DNA of 63,942 nt, counting the filler, from Reticulomyxa filosa (taxonomy: Eukaryota > Protista > Foraminifera), in assembly GCA_000512085.1 (NCBI GenBank). It is 20 parts of 20 records of this genome, joined end to end, with 100 filler letters (N's around TTAATTAATTAA, not from the genome) between each part and the next. Parts side by side here need not be neighbours in the genome. Positions count along the whole stretch, not along the records: positions 48,555 to 50,892 come from ASPP01030168.1; 19 more parts are not named here. The stretch is one strand, 5' to 3'. Made by a program: the position numbers and the translations under genes. Positions 48,555 to 50,892 of this stretch are shown here, piece after piece (the first letter of the stretch is position 1; each line of letters begins with the position of its first letter). The notes under the pieces are model-generated. The model was not told the DNA's origin. It saw only the letters and a list, made by a program, of their open reading frames with translations, and made no database searches.

Positions 48555-48769
48555 CCCCGCCGATCCCACCACCGAAAGCGACATCGTCGCCCCCGCCATC
48601 GCGGTCGCCGAGCGCCTGCCGTTCATGCCGCCGACACCGATGGTCGCGCCGACGCTACGACGGCTGGCCGCACTGAAGCCGACGACGATCGTCGCTGATG
48701 CACGGGCCGACGTTCAAGGGTGATGGCGCGGCGGCGTTGGAGGAGTTGGCGGAGCACTATGCAAAGTAG
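48555..48769 (+). CDS. Bacterial MBL-fold metallo-hydrolase (FprA/ODP-like), C-terminal fragment
   Basis: Very GC-rich. TTESDIVAPAIA...PTLRRLAALKPTTI/ALMHGPTFKGDGAAALEELAEHYAK*, with one extra base near 48693. Confidence 0.7.
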
Positions 48770-48899
48770 ACCGACTCTCTACTCGTGAATCGCCAGGCTT
48801 CTTTCGGCCTATCATCTAAATATCGGCGTCTCACAACCCTGACTCGATTGCTCTAAGAAACTTCCATCATAGCAATAGCGTCCTCGGCAACGCCTTAGA

Positions 48900-49844
48900 C
48901 TAACTAATAGACGCAGGTCTGCGCGAGGCTTGGGAATAGAGCCAGTAAATGCCGCTATATCCGAGCAGGCGTAAGACATATTCACGAATTAGGTCCTGCA
49001 TATGCTCCATCAAAGCGAACATAGCATCGTGCATCGAGTTTGCTTGCAAGGAACCGAAAATGTGCTTTGTTACATTGTCGTATTCACGAATGAATCCGCG
49101 ATGAATAAGCGCATTGCGCAACCTTATAATCGCAGGAAGTGCGCCCGGCATCGCCATGCCAACATCATTGAGCGTGAGCTCGAGTAGGGTTCTGAAAGTT
49201 AGATTTCTTCCATTGCAATCGACGAACTGACCGCTGGGCCTCTCTGTGATGCCAAATCGGGCACCCTCAACAAGAGCGAAGTAACTTTTGACGCTCTCGA
49301 TGCATTGAATGCAAGTCGTGATCTGCGCTTCAAGAATTGTTCCAGGCAGGTCACTACTGACGACCATATGAAACAGAGCATTTAACCCGCGCGCTTCTTT
49401 CAGGTCTCTATAACGCGCCCATACTTGCGAAATGAAATTTACAATCTCACCATCGCCATTAGATAGGAAGGGTGGACGCCAATTATTTGGTCCAACCGGT
49501 ACTGGTATTCTATTGGCAACATCAAGGAAGCAGAAATAATAAGGAACGACTTGAGAGTGCGTTGCGAAGCTCAGCAACCAGCAAAGATCCTCCACTAGGA
49601 TCTTGCCTTCGGCCAGCGATCTGATCCCCTCTACCTCAATGACAGATGTGTCAGCTGGTTTCCCCCACAATCCCGACAGCGTTAGCAGCGCAACTGGCTG
49701 CTGCTTGATAGTGACCACATGTCCGCCAAGCGATAACTTGAACTCATTAAGCACTCTTCGCCCATTATCGGATTCCGATAAATGGTCGCCATACCCAATA
49801 AGATTCGCGACCCGAGCGCAGAAGATTGGATTATTATGCGCCAT
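48900..49844 (-). CDS. ApeA-like HEPN-domain protein (putative RNase effector)
   Basis: RNALIH = R-x4-H HEPN motif at 49101-49118, upstream CIES, and C-terminal LRLLGYSG. The N-terminal DLCWLLSFA motif is typical of ApeA-type N-terminal domains. AGGGA RBS lies 6 nt before ATG 49844. Confidence 0.8.
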   Translation of the reverse strand: MAHNNPIFCARVANLIGYGDHLSESDNGRRVLNEFKLSLGGHVVTIKQQPVALLTLSGLWGKPADTSVIEVEGIRSLAEGKILVEDLCWLLSFATHSQVVPYYFCFLDVANRIPVPVGPNNWRPPFLSNGDGEIVNFISQVWARYRDLKEARGLNALFHMVVSSDLPGTILEAQITTCIQCIESVKSYFALVEGARFGITERPSGQFVDCNGRNLTFRTLLELTLNDVGMAMPGALPAIIRLRNALIHRGFIREYDNVTKHIFGSLQANSMHDAMFALMEHMQDLIREYVLRLLGYSGIYWLYSQASRRPASIS

Positions 49845-49940
49845 CCTCAATCCCTGATTGAACCATAATTAATGCCTGTCAATCAGCAAAAATTGCGACT
49901 TAACTCTAGATTGAGACAGACTTAACTAGCAGGGGCAATT
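49845..49940. promoter_or_regulatory. Divergent promoter region with inverted and direct repeats
   Basis: Inverted repeat CTGATTGA/TCAATCAG (49854-49861, 49879-49886), direct repeats GACTTAACT (49897-49905, 49919-49927), and RBS-like motifs for both genes. Confidence 0.5.
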
Positions 49941-50892
49941 TTGAGCAAGATTGAATTAGATTGGGATTCATCTGGCGACTCAATGCCAGGATTTAACATC
50001 GCCATGGCTGTTGCCAATTGCGCAAGGCATTTAGTTGCCCAACAGAAGCCAGAACTTGAGGATTTGCTACCTCTCAATCGTCAGTTTCACTTTCAACATC
50101 ATCGCAGCAACAATGGCTGGTTCGTGTTGCGCGTTCAATTTATTGCAACAGCGCAAATGATTGTCGGCCCTAAAATGGACGAGCCGGACATTGAGTTTGT
50201 TAGAGAGAAAATCGGGACACAGACACTCTCGTCCCTGGATCAATTGCACGGTCTTCTCGGAAATGAGTGGGTTGGCTTTAATTGTTTTACCTATGTTGGG
50301 CCATACAATGGGGATCATGTCTCCCTGAAGAATATCCAAGAGCGTGTTGTAGAGTGGCTCAATATAACCGTCTTGCCACTTGCTCTTGAACACAACCGGA
50401 AACGTATTCTGCAGGCCATTCCGGCGCCTCCACAATTTGAGCCGGGACCAATCTGTAACTCTCTATGGGTAATCGAGTCCAACGATGGCTATTTGCAAGG
50501 CACAGGGTTCGATCTCGCGGAAGTGGGTATTGTGACGTGCGCCCACGTCCTCGGCACCACGCCCTACGCATTTCGCGCGAACAATTTCGCAAAGAAATAT
50601 CCAATCGAGATACTAGCAAGTCATAAGACAATCGACTTGGCGATCGTAAAGGTCGCAGGCGAAATGAGTGTCGGGCTCCGTCGCGGAAGCGCTGCAGCGC
50701 TCCAATTAATGGATCACTTGCTCGTTGCAGGCCATCCTAACTACTACATTGGAGACAGCGGCTTTCTAATGCCGGGGATTGCGGTGGGTTTTCGTACAAA
50801 ATCCGGCATTCGGCGAATTGTAACCAATGCTCCAATTGTGAGGGGAGCCAGCGGCGGACCTGTGGTTGATGCGAGCGGCACGGCGATCGGAG
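49941..50892 (+). CDS. Trypsin-like serine protease with an unknown ~160-aa N-terminal domain (3' truncated by the contig end)
   Basis: QGTGF, VTCAHVL (His), IDLAIV (Asp), GHP and GASGGPV (Ser). TTG start with an AGGGG RBS. No signal peptide. Confidence 0.9.

Follow-up and report, generated by a model that had tools for sequence, protein, structure and literature searches.

A short ApeA-like HEPN protein and a retron-type protease, probably independent of one another, occupy a variable low-GC islet

Experiments have established ApeA as a HEPN-based defence encoded by one gene (bioRxiv 10.64898/2026.01.26.701840; 10.64898/2026.03.20.713152). The ApeA proteins studied are about 580 amino acids (aa) long and consist of three domains, in which an N-terminal helical domain and the HEPN domain together build the pocket for the activating ligand (10.64898/2026.01.26.701840); they form decamers or dodecamers, and their substrates are phage RNA or the anticodon loops of tRNAs (10.64898/2026.01.26.701840; 10.64898/2026.03.20.713152). 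Trypsin-fold proteases, for their part, define retron type XI, where one is fused to a reverse transcriptase (RT) (Mestre et al. 2020, PMC7736814; PMC13712802), and trypsin-like proteases are also established as licensing metallo-β-lactamase (MBL) nucleases, α/β-hydrolases, Pepco and EACC1 (PMC12799240; bioRxiv 10.1101/2025.11.14.688446). Such protease–effector pairs recur in many systems, co-evolve and share one orientation, in which the effector gene mostly comes first, and their protease is joined to a recognised sensor (PMC12799240; 10.1101/2025.11.14.688446); HEPN is absent from the ten protease-gated effector classes surveyed (10.1101/2025.11.14.688446). Here we analyse a locus at which a HEPN gene (gene A) and a trypsin-fold protease gene (gene B) stand head to head. 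It lies in a 63,942-nucleotide (nt) stretch of DNA, the window, joined from 20 parts of 20 records of the Reticulomyxa filosa assembly GCA_000512085.1; positions are numbered along the whole window, and the piece in question, ASPP01030168.1, occupies 48555–50892. The two are probably independent single-gene conflict or cargo genes held in a small low-GC variable islet, and not the components of a two-gene system.

An earlier note on this DNA, made from the sequence alone, had described two head-to-head genes 96 bp apart and proposed that they act as a module, the protease licensing the nuclease by cleavage. The arrangement itself is borne out: the piece contains two long divergent open reading frames (ORFs), gene A on the minus and gene B on the plus strand, and both starts agree with the N-termini of homologues in alignments. 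The proposed module, by contrast, is not supported. Contexts were collected for gene A from six further relatives and 25 metagenome loci, and for the protease from 49 genome loci and three additional contexts; about 20 distinct gene A loci have flanks. Conservation of the divergent pair, which the note had set as a check, is seen at none of them: tblastn detects a gene A relative within 10 kb at 0 of the 49 protease genome loci, and a protease relative at no gene A locus apart from the window's own element. Neither the closest protease homologue (P0040, 50% identity) nor two others have a gene A nearby. Clustering of flanking ORFs identifies no conserved neighbour of the protease among 24 full-length protease loci, and none of gene A across its about 20 distinct loci. 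Homologues of the two genes thus do not co-occur and sit in unrelated contexts, which the earlier note had itself named as an outcome that would refute the module.

The same separation is observed at the orthologous site. Of the gene A relatives, the closest, at 65% aa and about 70% nt identity, is carried by locus L092 of a related genome, where it is flanked by the same oxygen-binding di-iron (ODP)/MBL-fold hydrolase gene (96% nt identity, one 1-nt gap) and the same aldo/keto reductase gene (88% nt identity) as the window's element. No protease is present at the L092 site, where only 166 bp lie between the starts of the reductase gene and of gene A. The flank homology between L092 and the window's element ends exactly at the protease stop codon, and it picks up again at about window 48759. 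Gene A therefore occurs alone, with no protease, at the very place where the window's element has both. The region between the ODP/MBL-fold and aldo/keto reductase genes (L092:1–1627; window 48760–50892) is a variable cargo site. It is because relatives of each gene occur without the other, even here, that the two are read as independent, and the fallback offered in the earlier note, of two independent defence genes, is the reading that we favour.

Gene A relatives occur in defence-island or mobile contexts, including serine recombinase/IS66, ThiF/SIR2_2/DUF2971, DUF6602 with RES, and a D5_N primase element. A defence-island-like region of Bradyrhizobium (L001:3882–10511, JAUEYO010000024.1) contains, in this order, AbiEii/AbiEi, a gene A homologue (48% identity), a 1,007-aa protein with a RelA_SpoT domain and an SLFN_AlbA_2 protein; locus L064 has the same divergent AbiEi-like neighbour. 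Protease relatives adjoin integrases, type IV secretion system (T4SS) coupling proteins, relaxases or ParA, or stand singly amid housekeeping genes. The P0040 gene is followed by one for an RNase_T protein with a faint BRCT match, and within 7 kb come Peptidase_M78, IstB_IS21 and an RVT_1 protein of 326 aa, with no gene A relative in the region (L089:888–10179). A 1,422-aa ORF that has no Pfam match (L037:11119–15384) directly follows the protease homologue of a cyanobacterium and is encoded on the other strand.

Gene A encodes 314 aa from its ATG, or 316 aa from a TTG at 49850. The intact HEPN motif RNALIH reported in the earlier note is confirmed. Neither R243 nor H248 varies among 34 close relatives or among 111 representatives of the family, N244 is nearly invariant, and E183 is likewise invariant in the 111 representatives. 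At E≤1 none of Pfam, NCBIfam, PADLOC and PHROGs gives a match for the protein, and searches of the PDB by sequence, with the protein and with the family profile, return chance-level rows only. A word search finds 38 relatives at 29–65% identity, mostly from soil metagenomes and unclassified Bradyrhizobium, and a profile search of 1.84 billion representatives finds 1,027 at E≤1e-3, with 190 reaching E≤1e-30; full-length matches of about 290–310 aa make up nearly all of the 150 best hits listed. Among the 111 representatives, 12 match HEPN_RiboL-PSP, 7 match DUF3644, itself a HEPN family (PMC3710099), 2 match HEPN_Apea (best 6e-6) and 1 matches ApeA_NTD1 (E 0.0025). HepT-like profile matches also occur among the relatives.

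The AlphaFold model of gene A, built on the family alignment, is of high confidence (predicted local distance difference test (pLDDT) 91.8; predicted template-modelling score (pTM) 0.90) and shows an N-terminal β-rich domain (aa 1–113) followed by a helical HEPN domain (aa 129–298). The latter combines the four-helix fold with an R-x4-6-H motif, the pair of features by which HEPN domains are recognised. A Foldseek search of the PDB with the whole model gives nothing at E≤1e-3. VIA-align rows spanning aa ~146–298, in turn, are HEPN proteins nearly throughout: the C-terminal region of AbiA, HepT and other HEPN toxins (8xdj, 7ae2, 5yep), minimal HEPN and Csm6, with Z values of 5–6.4. In the ESM Atlas, a shape search with gene A reaches whole-length template-modelling (TM) scores of 0.80–0.87 to clusters with PF18739 HEPN_Apea, PF18862 ApeA_NTD1 and YopA_M/YopA_C members, and the Atlas's own gene A model and language-model features concur (scores 0.97–0.98). 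Clusters in which 32–44% of the members carry ApeA_NTD1 give TM 0.77–0.80 and a feature score of 0.97, with predicted models on both sides of the comparison. A literature search pairing YopA with HEPN found nothing.

Gene A shares with ApeA and YopA a C-terminal HEPN domain with an R-N-x3-H motif, a non-HEPN N-terminal domain packed on the HEPN domain, and a whole-length similarity of predicted structures (TM 0.75–0.87). As with ApeA, it is a single gene without a conserved partner in defence-island contexts, and its nearest solved HEPN structure is the minimal HepT toxin (10.64898/2026.01.26.701840). It differs in size and architecture, with 314 aa in two domains against about 580 aa in three. 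The description of gene A as ApeA-like therefore stands as to the HEPN fold and membership of an ApeA/YopA-like group, seen in predicted structure and in the profiles of relatives, and does not stand as to a canonical ApeA architecture or profile match. The models support its assignment as a short two-domain ApeA/YopA-like HEPN protein, not as a canonical 580-aa ApeA. HEPN-MNT and other toxin–antitoxin systems are rejected as an identification, with no MNT-like or other conserved small neighbour at the gene A loci.

Gene B starts at a TTG, and 317 of its codons lie inside the piece; the complete gene, present in contigs L006 and L007, encodes 349 aa, ending about 45 residues past the catalytic serine. 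The full H/D/S triad read from the sequence in the earlier note proves invariant in 35 homologues, the three codons being those of H202 in TCAHV (50544–50546), D232 in IDLA (50634–50636) and S304 in GASGGP (50850–50852). Trypsin_2 is the sole Pfam family matched (E 1e-14), and the best named match is PADLOC RT-Protease_XI (E 1.3e-25 and 3.6e-24), which covers only profile positions 334–481, the protease part. In the model (pLDDT 90.9), aa 163–349 superpose on Deg/HtrA proteases with Z of 20–23, led by Deg2, Deg1, Rv0983 and DegQ at 22–23, and Foldseek matches have E of about 1e-13. The protein was earlier described as lacking a signal peptide, and in the model its N-terminus is indeed an acidic, confidently folded α/β domain and not a signal peptide, a signal-peptide predictor not having been used.

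Word searches yield 186 relatives of gene B from many phyla, most of them about 350 aa long. The N-terminal domain (aa 1–165) is conserved over this ~350-aa family and occupies the place that RT takes in retron type XI. Sequence searches of Pfam and PDB give no match for it, the Atlas features give no usable hit, and RVT_1 gives no hit in gene B or in 25 N-domains of the family. RT-fused relatives are 42–51% identical to gene B over the protease half only (~175 aa). In a quick tree of the protease domain, which is to be read coarsely, the ~350-aa family lies apart from most RT-fused proteins and the window's protease pairs with P0040. These data support gene B as a trypsin-fold protease of the cytoplasm that is akin to the effector domain of retron RT-proteases. 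With the retron type XI protein it shares a homologous protease domain, cytoplasmic location, the lack of PDZ and a single-gene layout; it differs in having a 165-aa α/β domain instead of RT, and implies no non-coding RNA. With HtrA, DegP and Deg it has in common the S1C fold and the triad, but it lacks the signal peptide and PDZ of HtrA/DegP, its N-terminal domain is unrelated to theirs, its distribution is patchy and mobile, and its NCBIfam HtrA-type scores fall far under the cut-offs.

How the two proteins might act can be outlined from these relationships. Gene A would be a self-contained and normally latent RNase, in which dimerisation of the HEPN domain creates a composite R-x4-H active site. 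Infection would activate it to cut tRNA or phage RNA, as ApeA has been shown to do, and phage growth would be halted, perhaps at the expense of the cell. Gene B would be a separate cytoplasmic serine protease, its catalytic domain a sister of the retron type XI RT-protease effector domain and its 165-aa N-terminal domain plausibly a sensor or regulator, and it moves alone on integrative/conjugative elements and small islets. What the analysis shows is the folds, the catalytic residues, the sizes of the families, the absence of a conserved pairing and an orthologous site free of the protease; the RNase activity, the role in defence, the activation on infection and any function of the protease N-domain are inferred.

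Several observations weigh against this interpretation. On the side of gene A, the N-terminal helical ligand-pocket domain of canonical ApeA is missing, and therefore the same trigger as ApeA cannot be assumed; gene A cannot have a pocket of the same form. A VIA-align Z of about 6 is modest for helical domains. No profile for HEPN or ApeA in Pfam, NCBIfam or PADLOC picks up gene A itself, so that the ApeA link comes from predicted structure, language-model similarity and a few weak profile hits in relatives. On the side of gene B, the evidence for a defence role is its retron-XI-like domain and mobile contexts, and these alone. As to independence, both genes have like composition and diverge from a repeat-bearing spacer of 96 bp, and may have arrived together; the identity of 65% between gene A alleles, against 88–96% for the flanks, fits an exchange of the entire islet for a donor cassette already holding both.

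Foremost among the other explanations, and in our judgement unlikely, is that neither gene serves immunity. Gene A could be a HEPN RNase of the selfish-toxin or addiction type, or else an enzyme of RNA processing, and the protease could act in the maintenance, exclusion or quality control of mobile elements, the two being chance neighbours in a recombination hotspot. The neighbours of the protease are chiefly genes for integrases, T4SS coupling proteins, relaxases and ParA, not named defence genes, some of its copies are single amid housekeeping genes, and no PADLOC model matches gene A, all as this explanation would have it. However, gene A relatives adjoin AbiE, RES, SIR2, SLFN_AlbA_2 and similar genes, the closest characterised groups are defence proteins (ApeA for gene A, the retron XI RT-protease for gene B), and no antitoxin-like adjacent partner of either gene is conserved across loci.

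That the pair forms a lineage-specific two-gene system, in which the N-domain of the protease senses infection and the protease cleaves the HEPN protein to license it, or else degrades it to restrain it, is improbable. The locus resembles known protease–effector modules in that a trypsin-like protease adjoins a potentially toxic nuclease-type effector, and effectors are known to be licensed by proteolysis elsewhere (PMC12799240; bioRxiv 10.1101/2025.11.14.688446). The head-to-head arrangement on a short spacer with repeats and the shared atypical GC within one tiny islet would suit such a system, as would arrival in a single cassette, which the divergence of the gene A alleles relative to their flanks permits. 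The arrangement is moreover identical in contigs of several samples, some of which are runs of one hydrocarbon-metagenome sample and perhaps not independent. Nevertheless, this adjacency is found in one element only, with divergent genes and with relatives of each gene standing alone, whereas known modules co-evolve and are co-oriented, and HEPN lies outside the ten surveyed effector classes. Co-occurrence is zero over the 49 protease loci and the roughly 20 distinct loci of gene A, no neighbour of either gene is conserved, and the orthologous L092 site has gene A only. Gene A of the window also has no additional segment relative to protease-less homologues, that is, no insertion in the alignment that might serve as a proteolytic gate.

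A trypsin–MBL module, in which the protease would be paired with the upstream, same-strand MBL-fold gene and gene A inserted between them, can be dismissed as very improbable even though such pairs are widespread defence effectors (bioRxiv 10.1101/2025.09.03.673762; PMC12799240), given that the MBL-fold gene has the composition of host DNA (GC 0.69 against 0.50 for the protease), is present at 96% identity in protease-less L092, and has as its one family match a weak one of ODP type, and that the 24 full-length protease loci have no conserved neighbour.

The islet that the two genes share is about 2.2 kb long, from about 48760 to about 50990, and sits between two GC-rich host genes, the ODP/MBL-fold hydrolase on one side and the aldo/keto reductase on the other (Table 1). 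Within the piece, GC is 0.71 at the left end and 0.42–0.55 over the remainder; it is 0.49 for gene A and 0.50 for gene B, against 0.69 for the flanking host genes. An exact look-up of the gene A product identifies five short contigs, L006 and L007 among them, which match the piece at 99.9% identity, and the runs that contain this stretch are hydrocarbon metagenome, with no RNA run among them. Just outside the right edge of the piece, the start codon of the aldo/keto reductase lies 10 bp past the gene B stop on the same strand (L006:425–436), and transcription may therefore read through from the protease gene into this host gene.

The ODP/MBL-fold gene on the left matches Pfam ODP weakly (E 0.004). 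Relative to L092 it has one additional T at window 48692, which shifts the frame of its last ~25 codons: frame 2 stops at 48723 (...ADARADVQG*), and the conserved C-terminus (LMHGPTFKGDG...HYAK*) runs on in frame 3 to 48768. The additional T is also present in L006–L010, and is either a real change or a common assembly error.

The divergent spacer contains a direct repeat, GACTTAACT, in two copies at 49897–49905 and 49919–49927, and two 8-nt inverted repeats (49854–49861/49879–49886 and 49889–49896/49935–49942). No match to the sigma-70 consensus is found inside its 96 bp, and a promoter/terminator scan shows no excess over shuffled sequences. The spacer may be a shared regulatory region, with the repeats operator-like.

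Table 1. Features of the islet and its left flank, in window coordinates.
Feature	Position	Strand	Basis or remark
ODP/MBL-fold hydrolase gene, 3′ end	48555–48768	+	GC ~0.70; host gene flanking the islet, outside it
Low-GC spacer, host gene to gene A stop codon	48769–48899		GC 0.49; left edge of the islet
Gene A, 314 aa, short ApeA/YopA-like HEPN protein (predicted)	48900–49844	-	ORF, family, model
Gene A RNALIH codons, R243-N-A-L-I-H248, HEPN Rx4H catalytic motif	49101–49118	-	sequence
Divergent spacer, 96 bp	49845–49940		GC 0.41; repeats
Gene B N-terminal domain, aa 1–165, α/β	49941–50435	+	family alignment, model
Gene B trypsin-fold (S1C/HtrA-like) protease domain, cut by the piece edge at residue 317 of 349	50436–50892	+	Trypsin_2, RT-Protease_XI

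If the two genes are indeed independent, there is little unusual about the locus, which would be a hotspot for defence or cargo genes that has taken up two single-gene passengers; a protease-gated HEPN system, if true, would add HEPN RNases to the proteolytically licensed immune effectors. The wider meaning lies in the two families. The ~300-aa ApeA-like HEPN family comprises about 1,000 representatives, and because no model in Pfam, NCBIfam, PADLOC or PHROGs catches the protein described here, to which all four are blind, defence annotation pipelines miss this short family. It could reveal how a minimal ApeA-type RNase is switched on, the short form being informative because the ligand-pocket domain of canonical ApeA is missing from it. 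The ~350-aa family, which joins its N-domain to a retron-XI-type protease, may be an undescribed single-gene defence system. It shows that the effector protease of retron type XI also exists free of RT, on a different N-terminal domain, and therefore offers a natural comparison for the cleavage targets of the type XI protease.

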